A stretch of 63,961 bases of DNA, filler included, from Octopus bimaculoides (Eukaryota), in the NCBI RefSeq assembly GCF_001194135.2. It is 4 parts of 4 records of this genome, joined end to end, with 100 filler letters (N's around TTAATTAATTAA, not from the genome) between each part and the next. Parts side by side here need not be neighbours in the genome. Positions count along the whole stretch, not along the records: positions 35,813 to 62,717 come from NC_068984.1; 3 more parts are not named here. The stretch is one strand, 5' to 3'. The position numbers were made by a program, and so were the translations under genes. This document shows positions 39,371 to 62,817 of this stretch, piece by piece. The notes beneath the pieces are model-generated. The model had not been told where the DNA came from. It did no database searches and saw nothing but the letters and a program-made list of their open reading frames with translations. How positions within the stretch are numbered: position 1 is the stretch's first letter; every line of letters begins with the position of its first letter.

Positions 39371-39469
39371 CGTTATTTCTAATTAGGACATTTTCGATAA
39401 ACAACAGGACTCTTCGAATTGATTGATGACATCATCAAGAAGCTGGCCATTAATTTTGGTGTCTGTATC

Positions 39470-39800
39470 AAAATTACCTGACTGACCTTTTAAATTCACA
39501 GATACACTTGGTACTTTTAGCAAGCAACTATGCTTGTCAGGCTTAGAAAAAGAAAACAGTAAGGTATCGGTCGGTCTCTGACAAGTTTATGGTCGAACTT
39601 GAGGTAGTTGAGACCTCCGGCGTCTTTGGTCCCTGGATCATATCCCTGCTCACCGTTATCGGGGGCAGGGATTGCTGTCCGCAAGTGCGAGTCCCGCGAG
39701 TCAGAGTGGCTGTTCCAGCGCATGTCCTTCACTATCCTCCGGGGCAACGCTTTTCCATTTTGTCTGCTGGTGCCATGAGAAATGTTTCTATAGTGTGAAA
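39470..39800 (+). mobile_element. 3' fragment of a CRE-like (RLE) non-LTR retrotransposon
   Basis: With frameshifts it reads TDTL...KYRSVSDKFMVELEVVETSGVFGP...IGGRIAVRKCESRESEWLFQRMSFTILRGNA, matching the CRE-clade C-terminus (ETSGVFGP; LFQR.S..I.RGNA). Confidence 0.75.
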
Positions 39801-40652
39801 AGCAAGATTCTCCGTATTTGAGTAATACAAAGAGAAAGGGGAAAACATTAACAACTTTGAAAGATGTTTATTATTAACTCATTTTTATAGATATAGATGT
39901 ATATCATTGAACGATAATGTTTCATCATACACCAAATATTCAAGGATTTTACGGCGATCAGTCAACCAAGAAGGCAGGAATAATGAGCAAAAGAAGAAAA
40001 GAAACAAACATATTCAAGCAGTCAGTCGCTATCCGGCAATCAGCTGTTGGATTTGGCAGACTTGTTAAGTATGAAAAGCTGCAACACAAACTGCTACTAA
40101 CTTACAAATAAACAAACTATATTACGGCACATAACAGTCGCATTTCTCTCCCCGTTTTCTTTTCTATTTCTCATACTCACATAACTGCAGAACCAGTCCA
40201 CAACCATGCTATTGTACGAAAAGAACTTTCTTTTGCTTTTCTGTAGTTCCTGTCGGACCATCGTATCCAATTTAATCTTAAAACAATAAACCACCTATGG
40301 TAAATTGAAAACCTTGACTCTTCTCCCATTCATCCAACATTTAACTTTCTATTAATTTCATTGTTAAACCAGATACACACGAGTATGTCGTATACTGAAC
40401 GAGAACTTCTTAAGAGTGAAACCTGCATATGTAGAATAATAAAGAGCTTGGTACATTTAACAGAATAAATTATTTGTAAGAGTAAGTTAAAGAATTTTAT
40501 TATGAAAAGCAATTTTAATTAGGCTAATAATTTTTGAAAGGAGAAGACAAGTCGATGACATCGACTCCAATACTTGACCATGGGCCCGGGAACAGGGGGT
40601 GCAAGCACACCACCTAGAAGTTTTGTGGGGTGCAAAACCAAAATTTGCACCC

Positions 40653-41509
40653 TATAGGGTAGGATTCGTGACAGACGAACTGTAGACAAAAACTTCTTCC
40701 GTAGAAATGGTGTACGGTGCTCCCCTTACAGTGCCAAGAGAGTTCCTTCCGAATACGAAGTCAGACCCGGATGTCAAAAGGTACCTCGCTCAACTGAGAG
40801 ACAGCGTGGGCCAGTTGCACCCTGTTCCCTTGTCGACACACGGTACACTCAGATCATCCGTACCAAATGACCTCCGCACGACTAATTTTGTGTTCGTTCA
40901 ACGTGACACACGACGAAAACCCCTCCAGTCACCCTATGTTGGTCCATATCAAGTCATACATCCGGGAGATAAAACATTCCAACTCATAATTAGCGGACGA
41001 CAAGACACAGTCTCCATCGATAGATTGAAACCGGCCCATCTTGATATTGACAGCCCCGTTCAGGTGGCCCAACCACCAAACAGGGGCCGTCCTAGACAGA
41101 TCACACCAACCCTTTACAAGGAACAGTCACCAATGAATCGAGTAACCACATGCATGGGCAGGACAATTAAGATGCCTTCCCGTTTCCAATGACAGTCAAC
41201 AGTTCTGGCGGGGAGCTATGTAGGGCAGGATTCGTGATAGGCGAACTGTAGACAGAAACTTCGCTGCGGGCTAGCTAGGAAGTTGGTCAGCAGCAAAACA
41301 AATGGGATTTCCAGCAGGAGACGAAAAACAATAGAATGTCAACAGTGAGTGTGAAACGAATCTGAGTGAACTAAACAGAAATAACTGGCGACTTAAGCCC
41401 TGATGTACATAAAATAATAAACAGTTTGATTCGTCTTCACTAGTTTGTGAAGTTTACGCATAGCTTAACACCAGTTTGCGTATAGCTTAACAAAGCTGTA
41501 ACCCCTACT
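40653..41509 (+). mobile_element. Gypsy LTR retrotransposon remnant: 44 bp of 5' LTR, integrase C-terminus, PPT, 3' LTR
   Basis: ORF 40707-41192 has the GPY/F motif (LQSPYVGPYQV...DTVSIDRLKPAHLD). A purine tract precedes the LTR start TGTAGGG at 41219. The LTR ends ...CCCCTAC near 41508. 40653-40696 matches 41219-41262. Confidence 0.9.
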
Positions 41510-42588
41510 TACTTTTCTCAGGTTGAGAAAACAATGAATAAAAAGTGATCTGTAAAAAGTAGCTCAAAGTTAGGTTTACGACAACTTTTAACATGAAATA
41601 AGTTCCAATATAAAAATTTTTCTCTGTTCTATAAGACAAAATATACAAGTACACGAAGTTTTAAAGTGTTTCGGTAGAAAACACACTAAATAAAAAGTGG
41701 CGCCCGCCAAATCAGAAAGATCCGAACAAAGAACAAAAATAAATAAATAAATAAATAAATAAAAAAACAAGTCCTAGTTTGTAAAGATTTATGGAACTCG
41801 GTTTGCACCCCCTACGCAAATGTCAATTCCCAGCCAGTTTACTTTATTTTATCGATCCCTAAAGCGATGAAAGGCCAAGTTGACTTCGGTAGGATTTGTA
41901 CTCAAAACTTTAAGAGCTGGAAGAAAATGCTGCTGGACATTTTGTCCGAAGTGTTAATGGTTCTACTGTCTCCCTACCAAGTAAAAGTATATTTCGGGCT
42001 CCCAAATAGAAAAATTTCGAAACTCGAAATAACCTGCCTGGTTTCTTTGCGCATGTTTAGATTCATGTGCTCGTGTATAGTAATGTGTGCTTGCGGATGC
42101 ATAACACGCGTCTTTCTAAAGGCGTTCTAACCACGACGGCCACTTCATTAAAAACAAAAATTCCAATCTTGTCTTTTTAAGTGTTCCGTGTTCATCCAGT
42201 CTTTTTAAAAAGTGCTCCAACTGTGATCTTCTTTAAGCCTAATTCTCCTTCCTGTCAATGGAGTGGCCCTTTCAACCGTAATCATCTCTTCTTACCTTTA
42301 AAAACATTTCAAACATGATCGACTCATCTTTTTAAGCGCCCTAACAATGCCATTCAGTTCTTTTAAGAGTGTTTCAACAGCAATCATGTCTGCTCTGATT
42401 CAACCTATAATCAACCCCGCCTTAAAAAATATTTTTTTCGAACAATGTAACAGGGGGTACACAATCAAATATATCTAACCACAAATAAAATAACAAATGA
42501 TTGGATGTGGCATGCAGGAAATTTAGGCTTAAAAAATAACTACTATATCGTAAATGTTACTAATCAATGCATTTAAAAATTGGGCATA

Positions 42589-43449: not shown

Positions 43450-43733
43450 TTTTTATCAACGTCACGTGGTGGTCTAGAGAAGATAATATCTGCATCACAA
43501 ATCCTCTTTGACCAGCGTTAATAACTCGGCGTCAGACCTACTAATACCCGACATATACACAGTGTATCAAAAACACACAGCACGTGTAGTAGTGACGTTT
43601 TACAACGAAGATGTAGAGAATGAATGGCTTAACAAGCGGAAGTGATTGAGAGCGAATGCGCACTCCACTCGATTATTTAAACTGCATTGTCTTCATTTTC
43701 TTGTGTCATCTGCAACCAACCTGCCGCTACGAT
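43450..43733 (+). promoter_or_regulatory. Putative PREP promoter / 5' UTR region
   Basis: Unique, CpG-richer sequence directly upstream of the ATG with GTCACGTG (43461-43468), CACGTG (43581-43586), GTGACGT (43592-43598), ETS-like CGGAAGTG (43637-43644), TGCGCA (43657-43662) and TATTTAAA (43674-43681). Motif-only evidence. Confidence 0.5.
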
Positions 43734-43799
43734 ATGGAGTTTTCTTATCCTAAAGCTCGTCGTGACGAATCAGTTATTGATGATTACCATGGACACAAA
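43734..43799 (+). CDS. PREP: Prolyl endopeptidase (prolyl oligopeptidase, S9A) exon 1
   Basis: ATG at 43734 reads MEFSYPKARRDESVIDDYHGHK, matching the PREP N-terminus (YP..RRDE...DYHG.K). Donor AAA|GTGAGT at 43800, phase 0. Confidence 0.93.
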
Positions 43800-55040: not shown

Positions 55041-55168
55041 GTTGCAGATCCTTACCGATGGTTAGAAGATCCTGACGCTGAAGAAACCATTGCATTTGTT
55101 GATGCTCAGAATTCTATCAGCCACCCATTTATTGAGCAGTGTCCTCATCGTCAGAAGATACAAGAAAG
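55041..55168 (+). CDS. PREP: PREP exon 2
   Basis: Acceptor ttgtctag|; reads [42 protein letters not shown] (the classic DPY.WLEDPD motif). Donor AG|GTTTGT, phase 2. Confidence 0.97.
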
Positions 55169-55344: not shown

Positions 55345-55732
55345 GTGGAGGCGCAATGGCCCAGTGGTTAGGGCAGCAGACTCGTGGTCATAGGATCGCG
55401 GTTTCGATTCCCAGACCAGGCGTTGTGAGTGTTTATTGAGTGAAGACACCTAAAGCTTCACGAGGCTCTGGCAGTGGGGTTGTGGCGAACCCTGCTGTAC
55501 TCTTCCACCACAACTTTCTCTCACTCTTACTTCCTGTTTCTGTAGTGCCTGTAATTGAAAGGGTCAGCTTTGTCACACTGTGTCACGCTGAATATCCCCG
55601 AGAACTACGTTAAGGGTACACGTGTCTGTGGAGTGCTCAGCCACTTGCACGNNNNNNNNNNNNNNNNNNNNNNNNNNNNNNNNNNNNNNNNNNNNNNNNN
55701 NNNNNNNNNNNNNNNNNNNNNNNNNNNNNNNN
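55345..55732 (+). mobile_element. Second copy of the same SINE (3' end in gap)
   Basis: High similarity to 59909-60291; TSD GTTCAATTAAT before the element and at 55733-55743. Confidence 0.9.
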
Positions 55733-56734: not shown

Positions 56735-56830
56735 CTTGACAGAGAAATGGAACTTTGCTAAATACAGCTCACCTGCCGAGCATGGGGGATCCTATTATTA
56801 CTATTGCAATTCTGGCTTACAGAATCAGAG
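56735..56830 (+). CDS. PREP: PREP exon 3
   Basis: Acceptor tttctttcag|; reads LTEKWNFAKYSSPAEHGGSYYYYCNSGLQNQ. Donor AG|GTCAGT, phase 2-2. Confidence 0.97.
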
Positions 56831-57976: not shown

Positions 57977-58145
57977 TGTTTTGTATGTTCAGGATGACTT
58001 GAAAAGTGAACCCTGTGTGTTTCTAGATCCCAACTCCTTGTCTGAAGATGGCACCCTGTCAATCAGTGGCACAGCCTTCTCTGAGGATGGTTCCTATTTT
58101 GCTTATGGACTCAGTAAATGTGGTTCAGACTGGATCACAATACAG
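57977..58145 (+). CDS. PREP: PREP exon 4
   Basis: Acceptor after a long T tract; reads [56 protein letters not shown]. Donor CAG|GTTGGT, phase 0. Confidence 0.98.
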
Positions 58146-58894: not shown

Positions 58895-58996
58895 TTCAAA
58901 AAAGCTCCTTCTGGTGAAGATCTTCCTGATACACTAAAGCATGTAAAATTCTCAAGCATGGCATGGACTCATGATAACAAAGGAATGTTTTACAAC
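58895..58996 (+). CDS. PREP: PREP exon 5
   Basis: Acceptor tttctttcag|; reads [34 protein letters not shown]. Donor AAC|GTAAGT, phase 0-0. Confidence 0.98.
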
Positions 58997-59584: not shown

Positions 59585-59724
59585 AGATATCCTGTTGAAG
59601 GCAAATCAGATGGCACAGAGACAACCACCAATCTGTATAATAAGCTATATTACCACAGGTTGGGCACTGATCAAGACGAAGACCTGTTGACAGTTCAGTT
59701 TCAAAATGAGCCGAAATGGAAAAT
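59585..59724 (+). CDS. PREP: PREP exon 6
   Basis: Acceptor tttctgcag|; reads [46 protein letters not shown] plus AT. Donor AT|GTAAGT, phase 2. The next canonical PREP exon was not found in the window. Confidence 0.98.
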
Positions 59725-59908: not shown

Positions 59909-60291
59909 GTGGAGGCACAATGGCCCAGTGGTTAGGGCAGCGGACTCACGGTCATAGGATCGCGGTTTAGATTCCCAGACCGGGCGTTGTGAGTGTTTAT
60001 TGAGCGAAAACACCTAAAGCTCCATGAGGCTCCGGCAGGAGATGGTGGCGAACCCTGCTGTACTCTCTCACCACAAATTTCTCTCGCTCTTACTTCCTGT
60101 TTCTGTTGTGCCTGTAATTCAAAGGGTCAGCCTTGTCACACTGTCACGCTGAATATCCCCGAGAACTACGTTAAGGGTACACGTGTCTGTGGAGTGCTCA
60201 GCCACTTGCACGTTAATTTCACGAGCAGGCTGTTCTGTTGATCGGATCAACTGGAACCCTCGACGTCGTAAGCGACGGAGTGCCAACAACT
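59909..60291 (+). mobile_element. Full-length tRNA-derived SINE (Arg-like head) with 11-bp TSD
   Basis: A/B boxes TGGCCCAGTGG / GGTTTAGATTCC; 3' stem-loop CGTCG-TAAG-CGACG and a CAA tail; TSD TCATCACCATC at 59898-59908 and 60292-60302. Confidence 0.92.
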
Positions 60292-60587
60292 TCATCACCA
60301 TCATTTCATGTTCCTTTTGCCATGTTAGCATGTCCAAAATCCAAATGACTGTTATTTTCAGATGTTTAAAAGTCTTTCCACTTTCAATTTGAAGTTAATT
60401 TTTTTCTACATATGTAGATAATATATTCAGATGATATATTGAAAATTTTCAAATGATATTTTTTAAATGTAAAACTTATATTTTATTCTTTTTAAATATT
60501 ATTTTCTATAAATTTCAATCTTTAACTGTGGTCAGTTTTCAACTTGGCATGTTCTACTGACCGACAACTTCGCTCTTTTCCATCCAG

Positions 60588-62111
60588 GCAATCTACTCAA
60601 GTCTCTGATTCCTATAGCTATCCCAACCAGTGGCAGAATCCCTACCACAATTATTCTAGTTCATATGGCTCTACATATACAATGTCTGGCACGGCAATGG
60701 CTGCTGTAAATGAGTGGCAGAAGCCAATATTTGGAGCCGGTGCCCCACCGTCTTACTTATCTCATCCTCTTTCTTCTGCTTCTGGTGGTATTTCATGCAC
60801 ATCAAGTCAGTTAATGAAACCAGATACTTCTCAGAAAGTAAAAGAATCTTCTTTGGAAACAAAAACGAATAAAACAAAAAAGAAGAAAAATCAAAAAAAT
60901 AAAAGTCAGCAAAATTGTTCTCAGGATACTAGTTTGCAGAATTCTTCAGATTTTGAACGAAATTGTAACAAATTAAATAATAATTATTTGCCATATAATC
61001 AGAACTGTGGCTGGGCGACACCATTGCATGGTTATCAAAATGGAAGGCCTTATTCACCAAACCCTACTGGTTATTATAATCAGCAGTACTGTTTATTTTC
61101 TGGTCCAAAGGAGCAAACCACTTCATCGTCTGCAAAATACTCACAGCAAAGTGTGCCTAGTAACAACAATAATTATAAAATCACTGCCACCAATAATTGC
61201 GTTAACTACCCAGCTAATAATTGCAGAAGTAACTACAATTATAATTATCCAGCTATGGGGTTTTCTAGCAATAGCATTAACCCAAATACTGAGTTATCCA
61301 ACAGTAACAATTATCTGGCTACAAGAGTGTCAAACAACAACGATAACAATAATAATTACTTAGCTATAGCGCAATCAGGCTGTAACCAGAGCAGCTACAA
61401 CCCAGCTATGAAGCAATCTAACAACATAAATAATGGTTACTACTCAGCTATAGAGCAACATAACAACCTAAATAATGGTTACATGTCTAACTCAGGCCCC
61501 ACAACACATTGTCAGTTGCCCTCCCAACAATATAATAAAAACAAGACCCACCACCAGTATCAGGCAGTCAATACTGGCCATTTGTCAACCACACAACAAA
61601 ATAATTACAACATGCCCCCAAACTTTAATCAACAACAGGACAGTTGTTATCCAGCGCCATCATACTTTACACCATGGCAACAGTCAGGGAACTATTCTTA
61701 TTCAGCACCACAAACTTCGTCCTTTTATTCTACTTCTCCAGTGACACCAGTTTCTGATAGTTTCTATTCAAAATCTCCAAGTTATCAATCTCCACCCACA
61801 TCTCCTACATCTGTTTCTAATCCTAAAACATTTAATACCACCCCGTCAAGTTCGTCTTTCTTTTCAAACCAAACGGCATCCTATTCCCATGTAGGTGGCC
61901 AATCATACTCTCAGTCTTGGTATCAATATAGCTACCCTTACTATGGAGGTTATCCAAGTTTTTATAGCTACCCTTACTGCCAGTATACTTCATCAGCTTC
62001 TTGTTCAGCCAATGCCCAAGTGAACTGTGGACAAAAAAATATGCAATTTGGAAACCTGAAGTCTGGAGAAAAAGCTTCTATCCCTGAAACTATCTTCGTC
62101 CCAAATTACAG
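60588..62111 (+). CDS. Large low-complexity (S/N/Q/Y-rich, prion-like) coding exon inside PREP intron 6; candidate cassette exon
   Basis: Part of a 552-codon stop-free ORF (60544-62202) in AT-rich DNA. Branch point TACTGAC at 60555-60561, pyrimidine tract and CAG ending 60587, donor CAG|GTTGTT at 62112. Length 1524 nt (508 codons), phase 2-2, compatible with the exon 6 donor. Coding status is well supported; membership in the PREP transcript is inferred. Confidence 0.75.
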
Positions 62112-62579
62112 GTTGTTATTCTATTTTCAAAATGCAACTTTTCTGTTGTTCTGTCTGTTCCACCTCCCTGGCACTTTCACTTCCAAATTTGTTTTGGAAT
62201 AGTCTCTTTCTAACCTGTCCTAGATTATTCATTTGTATTTGATCTTCAACTATCCCTTGCACTTATGTTATGTAGCTTCATCAATTGCTACAATAACATC
62301 ATAATCGCATGTTTTGGGTAGTCTTCATCATATTTTGTGTTGGTCATTTTCTGTAGTCTACTTAATAAGTCATTTTTGGATGATGTAGGTTTGATGGGTT
62401 AATACTTTGTATCTAACCTAAACAAATCATGGAAATATCCAGAGTACAGTGGGTGCTGTTTCTGTGGTGTTGGCACTACTGATGTTGTGTAACTTACAAG
62501 ACAAGTCTCTTTGACTGAGTTGAAGTGTAGTAGAGAGGGAGATGGCTTCATAGTAGACGTGTGCGTGTGTTTATGTGTA

Positions 62580-62624
<45 letters not shown>

Positions 62625-62817
62625 ATACATATATATATACATACATATATATATACATACATATATATATATATATACATACATATATATATATACATAC
62701 ATATATATATATATATANNNNNNNNNNNNNNNNNNNNNNNNNNNNNNNNNNNNNNNNNNNNTTAATTAATTAANNNNNNNNNNNNNNNNNNNNNNNNNNN
62801 NNNNNNNNNNNNNNNNN

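Follow-up and report, generated by a model that had tools for sequence, protein, structure and literature searches.

An open, conserved giant exon in intron 6 of the octopod prolyl endopeptidase gene: a candidate frame-preserving splice switch

Intron 6 of the prolyl endopeptidase (PREP) gene of Octopus bimaculoides contains a 1524-nt segment that, judged by the way it evolves, is a selectively maintained protein-coding exon, to which we refer as the giant exon. It lies in a stretch of 63,961 nt (filler letters included; hereafter the window, whose positions are used throughout) from NCBI RefSeq assembly GCF_001194135.2. The exon appears to have arisen within an old phase-2 intron, either in octopods or in cephalopods at large, and with moderate confidence we regard it as an octopod-specific, maintained alternative coding exon of PREP, which is used internally between exons 6 and 7 and preserves the reading frame. 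PREP is among the most conserved animal peptidases and is studied for its part in neuropeptide turnover as well as for non-catalytic roles, for example in alpha-synuclein aggregation. The giant exon is partly present in databases already, as part of the O. sinensis protein XP_036358312.1 and as a 506-aa orphan model; we found no annotation or paper that describes it as a conserved in-frame PREP exon, and a survey of the literature on octopus PREP and PREP isoforms yielded nothing relevant.

A conserved coding exon in PREP intron 6

The piece of the window at 35813-62717 is 100% identical to O. bimaculoides chromosome CM046604.1, at the locus that encodes prolyl endopeptidase XP_014785500.1. 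The product of this locus matches the Pfam families PF02897 and PF00326 and is a member of the S9A prolyl endopeptidases. For comparison, we used the corresponding loci of O. sinensis (L001), of the chromosome-level O. bimaculoides assembly (L002), of Argonauta hians (L003) and of O. vulgaris (L004); 'four octopods' or 'four species' refers to these in the following. Exons 1-6 were mapped with the database protein P0123 (exon 6 by tblastn mapping and translation) and encode the N-terminal hydrolase segment together with propeller blades 1-3 (slashes mark splice sites):

43734-43799: PREP exon 1 (annotated start at 43656)
55041-55168: PREP exon 2, donor AG/GTTTGT
56735-56830: PREP exon 3
57977-58145: PREP exon 4, donor CAG/GTTGGT
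58895-58996: PREP exon 5
59585-59724, + strand: PREP exon 6, ending AAA AT/GTAAGT in phase 2
28824 of L002, past the end of the piece (69479 on the scale of the window, and so beyond it): PREP exon 7

Exon 6, which we take to encode the flexible loop A of the propeller, ends after a stretch of 28 residues in the two bases AT, and this exon end is identical in O. sinensis, O. vulgaris and Argonauta. The following intron is ancient, as it occupies the same position and phase in mussel and chiton (PKWMM/GAEV).

Within intron 6, the listing of open reading frames (ORFs) contains an ORF at 60544-62202 (+ strand, 552 aa). The underlying stop-free run spans 558 codons, compared with 200 codons for the second longest run on either strand of this 27-kb piece, and the chance of such a run is ~5e-15 per start, given a stop-trinucleotide frequency of 5.7% in the piece. 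The elements of the giant exon and its flanks are as follows:

60490-60587, + strand: conserved upstream intronic flank, with TGTGGTCAGTTTTC at 60527-60540, GCATG at 60547-60551, and then the branch point, pyrimidine tract and AG
60507-60538, + strand: candidate intronic core promoter, with TATAAA at 60507-60512 and the initiator-like TCAGTTT, its A at 60534
60555-60587, + strand: acceptor side as read from the sequence, with TACTGAC at 60555-60561, a pyrimidine tract and AG at 60586-60587
60588-62111, + strand: giant exon, 1524 nt (508 x 3) or 508 codons, entered and left in phase 2
60588-60681, + strand: acceptor-proximal coding segment before the first ATG, (M)QSTQVSDSYSYPNQWQNPYHNYSSSYGSTYT, 31 codons
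60682-60684, + strand: first in-frame ATG, start of O. sinensis isoform X1 and of the model P0001, its Met conserved in Argonauta
60745-60756, + strand: PPSY, a PPxY-type motif in the island MSGxAMAAxNEWQxPxFGAxAPPSYL, invariant in the four species
60862-60903, + strand: lysine-rich cluster KTNKTKKKKNQKNK (KKNKTKKKK in Argonauta), resembling a nuclear localisation signal
61396-61483, + strand: in-frame 42-nt (14-codon) tandem repeat within the N-rich core
62059-62111, + strand: conserved exon end outside the low-complexity sequence, KSGEKASIPETIFVPNY followed by AG, near-invariant from Octopus to Argonauta, most of the changes falling on third positions of codons
after 62111, + strand: donor side as read from the sequence, CAG/GTTGTT
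62112-62165, + strand: weak donor GTTGTT and pyrimidine-rich downstream flank, 54 nt that are 100% identical to O. sinensis
62200-62202, + strand: read-through stop TAG of the unspliced ORF, which belongs to no conserved coding tail

A preliminary description of this DNA had proposed a cassette exon of 508 stop-free codons with these splice sites, and had likened its donor to those of exons 2 and 4; every one of these sites is present where it was placed, including the two comparison donors. In each of the four octopods, moreover, phase 2 is found at the end of exon 6 and at the start of exon 7, and the length of the giant exon is a multiple of 3, so that inclusion and skipping both keep the frame: on inclusion, the AT of exon 6 and the G of the giant exon form a Met codon, which is followed by QSTQ. 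Likewise, the ORF beyond the splice sites is intron-like, as had been suggested, with codon log-odds of -18 bits upstream of the acceptor and -25 bits downstream of the donor.

The comparison between species indicates that this frame is coding. Across the 1524 nt, none of the three Octopus species (O. bimaculoides, O. sinensis and O. vulgaris) differs from another by an indel, whereas flanking aligned DNA at the locus has 10.9 gap events per kb, a rate at which the absence of indels from the giant exon has a probability of ~6e-8. The ratio of non-synonymous to synonymous substitution rates (dN/dS, or omega) between O. bimaculoides and O. sinensis is 0.34 in the frame of the ORF (dS 0.124, dN 0.042), while the two remaining frames give 0.67 and 1.12, and the encoded segment is 90.5% identical to that in XP_036358312.1. 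Most importantly, intron 6 of Argonauta hians carries an intact orthologous exon of 1485 nt (495 x 3), which is recovered in a single tblastn match over exon residues 1-507 (E = 3e-111). Although Octopus and Argonauta differ here by a dS of 0.96 and share only 52% identity over aligned residues, omega is 0.36 (0.29-0.36 across all comparisons of the exon), 22 of 22 indel events are in frame, and Argonauta keeps the acceptor, branch point, pyrimidine tract, AG and donor (GTTGYT) as well as the exon 6 and exon 7 phases. For canonical PREP, the identity between these two species is 92.7%; the giant exon thus changes several-fold faster, yet it is clearly constrained.

Outside the cephalopods, the same PREP intron of mussel and chiton is ~1.0-1.2 kb long and contains no such ORF. 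The conserved ORF that the preliminary description expected in related introns therefore exists in Argonauta and is lacking in these two molluscs. A full HMMER scan of 1.84 billion representative proteins found the exon's own cluster and no homologue, and a word-indexed search of 5.8 billion proteins returned nothing beyond that cluster. Pfam gave sub-threshold noise for the Octopus exon and no match for that of Argonauta, and the four loci hold no second copy. Given this lack of a homologue, a family or a further copy, we reject the view that it derives from any known domain, transposon or paralogue. We also noticed a similarity between the start of the exon (QSTQVSDSYSY) and that of exon 7 (GAEVSVDGKY); it has no support at the DNA level and we treat it as coincidence.

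Use as an internal, first or terminal exon

The 3' splice site of the giant exon is strong, with a consensus branch point, a pyrimidine tract and CAG, while its 5' splice site, GTTGTT, is weak and conserved as GTTGYT. The upstream flank of ~98 nt is the sole long collinear intronic blastn alignment between O. bimaculoides and Argonauta; the other matches are exons, exon flanks of at most 29 nt and short, scattered, repeat-like intron matches, and the conserved upstream flanks of canonical PREP exons do not exceed 21 nt in this comparison. Against O. sinensis, the top 3 of 581 non-exon segments of 200 nt fall here, with ~98% identity compared with a mean of 90%. The upstream block contains the invariant TGTGGTCAGTTTTC and GCATGTTCTACTGACC, the latter of which sets GCAUG against the branch point. 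As GCATG is common (background frequency 1.28 per kb), we retain an Rbfox-type reading as a lead only. Taken together, a strong acceptor, a weak donor and conserved flanks would be typical of an exon under splicing regulation whose default is skipping.

We consider use as an internal exon most likely, with a start inside the intron, possibly coexisting with it, as the main rival. The 31 codons before the first ATG are instructive in this respect. With a codon-usage log-odds model trained on the rest of the giant exon and scored on 93-nt stretches, which is largely a test of composition, they reach +21 bits, whereas the maximum among 4802 intronic 93-mers is 9.9 and 93-nt chunks inside the giant exon score +10 to +30 bits. 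GC content rises from 24.6% to 40.4% at the acceptor rather than at the ATG. Furthermore, the segment is open in the four octopods and conserved at the protein level in Argonauta, with an omega of 0.16-0.33 and an in-frame 12-nt indel (a deletion in Argonauta), and in-frame stops lie upstream of the acceptor AG at a distance of 21 codons in Octopus and 7 in Argonauta. With a coding-like segment before the ATG and stops just upstream of the acceptor, an internal exon fits better than a first exon. A first exon would also need no branch point, pyrimidine tract or AG, so that their conservation in Argonauta points in the same direction.

Several observations weigh against internal use. The junction between exon 6 and 60588 appears in no annotation of the four octopod genomes, and the longest annotated products have 951 aa in O. 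sinensis, 734 in O. bimaculoides, 734 in O. vulgaris and 731 in Argonauta, where the cassette form is expected at ~1215-1241 aa. The sole model that contains the exon spliced into PREP, XP_036358312.1, begins at the internal ATG. A pair of TATAAA and initiator, correctly spaced at 27 nt, is found in three Octopus species 54 nt upstream of the acceptor, and the codon test of the pre-ATG segment responds mostly to composition. Finally, 508 residues beside an active-site residue in a closed cavity are structurally awkward, which makes a functional full-length fusion less readily plausible.

Annotations and transcript-derived data provide the following picture. The skipping form is annotated as the canonical 734-aa products. 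XP_036358312.1 ('uncharacterized protein LOC115210857 isoform X1', 951 aa) splices the donor of the giant exon to exon 7 and runs to the C-terminus; it is a computed model, so the use of this junction is known from a gene model. A 2015-era protein set contains P0001, a 506-aa single-exon model from ATG 60682 to stop 62202. A search with a hypothetical 746-aa junction protein (exons 1-6 and the giant exon) found no protein that covers both halves, and no contig turned up in an exact search for the 506-aa model. The exon occurs in none of the Logan-derived proteins, an absence that is uninformative, and one cephalopod transcript contig, L007, shows the canonical junction alone. Of the cassette exon put forward in the preliminary description, the coding character, the boundaries, the frame and, in a RefSeq model, the junction from the donor to exon 7 thus stand, while its link to exon 6 has been seen in no transcript and in none of the four genome annotations.

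The main rival holds that the giant exon is an alternative first exon with an intronic promoter, transcribed from ~60534, translated from ATG 60682 and spliced from 62111 to exon 7. Its product of ~951 aa would carry the low-complexity segment in place of PREP residues 1-259, that is, the N-terminal hydrolase part and blades 1-3. This is exactly the structure of XP_036358312.1, the longest annotated O. sinensis product; the combination of TATAAA at 60507 and TCAGTTT with its A at 60534 occurs only 2 times on the + strand in 44.6 kb, the upstream 250 nt are the most conserved non-exon block relative to O. sinensis, and the ATG, which has an A at -3, is conserved in Argonauta. However, Argonauta has CTGTTCA in place of TATAAA while retaining the branch point, pyrimidine tract and AG, the would-be 5' untranslated region at 60588-60681 shows the evolution of a coding sequence, in the frame of the exon itself, and out-of-frame ATGs at 60549 and 60665 precede the start codon. 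Moreover, the Gnomon model could be incomplete at its 5' end or could have had the earlier 506-aa model of O. bimaculoides as its seed, and the product would be left without three of its propeller blades and a part of its hydrolase fold. We therefore think it rather unlikely that the exon serves as a first exon instead; such use may also coexist with the cassette use, which would make it a hybrid first and internal exon. A much less probable reading leaves the donor unused, either in a nested gene (P0001, 60682-62202) or in a terminal exon that follows PREP exons 1-6 and ends at 62202. UniRef and MetaClust contain a 506-aa single-exon model that corresponds exactly to this ORF, the 54 nt past the donor are fully conserved relative to O. 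sinensis, with high conservation up to about the stop, and the tail is hydrophobic. Yet the frame of the tail is shifted by a 17-nt indel that separates O. bimaculoides from O. sinensis and O. vulgaris; O. vulgaris has also lost 3 nt from the tail, and Argonauta has a gap of 12 nt there when compared with the three Octopus species. Just the first four residues of the tail (RLLF) match Argonauta, and its codon score of -25 bits is that of an intron. In addition, octopods conserve both the donor and the exit in phase 2, there is no AATAAA or ATTAAA within 1.5 kb downstream, and in L002, the chromosome-level O. bimaculoides record, this stretch is not listed as a gene of its own. The terminal exon that the preliminary description had offered as an alternative is thus disfavoured by the frameshifting indel and the missing poly(A) signal. 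The start codon of its nested same-strand gene, ATG 60682, is that of the one annotated isoform with the exon, which however continues into PREP exon 7 rather than ending within the exon.

We regard it as very improbable that the segment is no functional coding exon at all, whether because the ORF arose by chance or decayed recently, because it is left over from a transposon or because the annotation is in error. In favour of this reading, neither a Pfam family nor a homologue among 1.84 billion representative proteins was found, slippage can produce low-complexity sequence with a 42-nt repeat inside it, and most annotations are without the exon. Nevertheless, 495-508 codons have stayed open in four species across a dS of ~1, with 22 in-frame indels, an omega of ~0.33 and conserved splice sites, and no other copies occur in the loci examined.

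Two further details concern the region around the first ATG and the read-through tail. Both out-of-frame ATGs are situated downstream of the candidate start site in the intron and before ATG 60682; the frame opened by the first (60549-60560) has 3 codons and overlaps the branch point, and that opened by the second (60665-60709) has 14 codons in O. bimaculoides and by eye appears longer in O. sinensis, because the stop TAA is changed to CAA there. A role of the read-through tail as a conserved tail-anchor, conceivable from its 54 fully conserved nucleotides, was rejected because of the 17-nt frameshifting indel and because conservation with Argonauta ends after four residues.

The encoded segment and its place in the enzyme

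The giant exon encodes a segment rich in S (17%), N (14%), Y (10%), Q (9%), P (8%) and T (7%), with 5% glycine and few charged residues, and Argonauta maintains this composition despite the identity of 52%. The segment is predicted to be disordered. A single-sequence AlphaFold run gave a mean pLDDT of 35, no helices and one weak hairpin at exon residues 464-489, which is weak evidence of disorder, since no alignment was used. The preliminary description had called the segment prion-like, and it is indeed rich in S, N, Y and Q and predicted to be disordered. The Michelitsch-Weissman criterion reportedly requires at least 30 Q+N per 80-residue window; as the three Octopus species peak at 30 per 80 aa and Argonauta at 26, the term is borderline, and by its composition the segment is more accurately described as a tyrosine-studded S/N/Q/P low-complexity region.

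Several islands within this region are conserved, namely QSTxVSDSYSY, MSGxAMAAxNEWQxPxFGAxAPPSYL, ASGGISC, KKNKTKKKK, GWxTPxHGYQ, YPxFYSYPYCQYT and KSGxKASIPxTIFVPxY, the last of which is not low-complexity. The PPxY-type motif is a putative one, and the lysine-rich cluster may act as a nuclear localisation signal, which it resembles. In composition, the closest known counterparts are the FET-type or prion-like domains of FUS, EWS and TAF15, which are likewise polar and uncharged, have regularly spaced tyrosines and conserve composition over sequence. The likeness is compositional: the PREP exon has no sequence homology to these domains, its glycine content is low, and its Q/N density is the borderline one given above.

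An AlphaFold model of canonical octopus PREP (pLDDT 84.7) places the split codon, Ile260 (AT/A), in a two-residue turn between the bridge 258-259 and the strand 262-264. The insertion site is therefore the linker from strand D of blade 3 to strand A of blade 4, in agreement with the beta-propeller location given in the preliminary description. In an alignment of 41 PREP sequences, octopus K259/I260/G261 align with porcine M235/G236/G237, so that the junction codon is one residue past the equivalent of Met235. This residue lines the S3 substrate pocket together with Phe173, Cys255, Ile591 and Ala594 (PMC5589771). At one residue from it, an insert would both depart from and return to the wall that encloses the internal catalytic cavity. 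An insertion at this site is seen in none of the 41 aligned PREPs, which upholds the earlier statement that no PREP with such an insert is known, and none of the best 120 database matches contains the giant exon. Canonical PREP (MEROPS S9A; XP_014785500.1 and the porcine and human enzymes), which shares the intron position and phase with mussel and chiton, thus represents the host gene without the exon, to which inclusion would add 508 residues beside the S3 pocket. XP_036358312.1 has the same orthologous exon from the equivalent of ATG 60682 to the same donor, followed by PREP exon 7, and differs in omitting the 31 conserved pre-ATG codons and PREP exons 1-6.

On the reading as an internal exon, skipping would yield the canonical peptidase of 708-734 aa. 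Inclusion would replace Ile260 by Met, 506 residues and Arg, giving a product of ~1215-1241 aa, in which the predicted peptides EPKWKMQSTQVSDSYSYPNQWQNPYHNYSSSYGSTYTM and IFVPNYRGAEVSVDGK would occur. Judged from the structural model, inclusion probably disables or re-gates the peptidase, as the normal closed state would be prevented. The preliminary description had envisaged a peptidase joined to an added condensate- or amyloid-forming domain; as the site abuts Met235 and is no neutral propeller loop, a disabled or re-gated enzyme seems likelier. The included isoform would then most likely be a peptidase that is held open, re-gated or inactive, and would act mainly via its multivalent low-complexity segment, through self-association, partner binding or relocalisation. 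A product of the type of isoform X1, which lacks blades 1-3 and the N-terminal hydrolase segment, is also unlikely to be a normal peptidase. As a broader scenario, which we put forward tentatively and consider possible rather than probable, a regulated PREP splice switch may have existed since before the split between Octopus and Argonauta, with a ~500-residue, Y/N-rich disordered segment that would emerge from the catalytic cavity wall and turn this conserved, neuropeptide-processing enzyme into a scaffold that is open, self-associating and probably inactive and that may be nuclear or form condensates.

There are precedents for several aspects of this scenario. Vertebrate ankyrin-B and ankyrin-G and, independently evolved, Drosophila ankyrin possess giant exons that are large, lineage-specific, alternatively included and mostly unstructured (PMC6660793). 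We consider these the closest functional analogue, that is, a very large, unstructured and alternatively included insert in a conserved protein. The ankyrin giant exons measure 6-8 kb and sit between folded scaffold modules, whereas the PREP exon measures 1.5 kb and interrupts a folded enzyme domain at a position that lines the active site. Similarly, the non-catalytic S9 proteins DPP6, DPP10 and PREPL reuse the scaffold for non-peptidase functions. These, however, are separate genes with altered catalytic residues, whereas the octopus isoform would use the same catalytic exons as the active enzyme and differ from it by a single alternative exon.

If this interpretation is true, the exon is a natural experiment in which splicing switches a folded enzyme to a scaffold, and a case of a large disordered region that arose inside an ancient intron. 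It also matters for annotation, as the annotations of the four octopod genomes overlook the exon, treat it as a gene of its own or model it from the internal ATG only.

Other features of the locus

The annotated PREP start at 43656 adds 26 residues (MRTPLDYLNCIVFIFLCHLQPTCRYD, 43656-43733) to the conserved start MEFSYP. These residues have a pLDDT below 50 and mostly lack a counterpart in 40 other aligned PREPs, where they occupy columns outside the alignment consensus; the annotated start codon is thus probably placed too far upstream. Further upstream, a block at 39469-42234 has no collinear counterpart in O. sinensis. Inside it, a 161-aa ORF (40707-41192, + strand; KPLQSPYVGPYQVIHPGDKTFQLIISGRQDTVSIDRLKPAHL) resembles the C-terminus of an LTR-retrotransposon integrase, although Pfam gave no match for it.

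Between exon 6 and the giant exon, a repeat of ~300-420 nt occupies 59909-60332. Given its tRNA-like 5' part (ggcccagtggttagggcagcggactc), it looks like a short interspersed nuclear element (SINE), and ARAGORN detected no intact tRNA in it. A second copy, 92% identical, is located in intron 2 (55345-55651), and the repeat is missing at the orthologous position in O. sinensis. The insertion stops ~255 nt upstream of the giant-exon acceptor, exactly where the conserved block starts.

Downstream, the intron between the giant exon and exon 7 measures ~7.4 kb in O. bimaculoides (L002 21457-28823) and ~2.3-2.6 kb in O. sinensis (L001 35262-37639), O. vulgaris and Argonauta; the greater length in O. 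bimaculoides suggests lineage-specific insertions downstream of the giant exon. A gamma-glutamyl transpeptidase gene follows PREP tail-to-tail outside the window (L001 55893-63213 and L002 44467-44577, both on the - strand). The piece itself ends in a (TA)n/(CATA)n microsatellite at 62575-62717, which gives rise to spurious ORFs on both strands.

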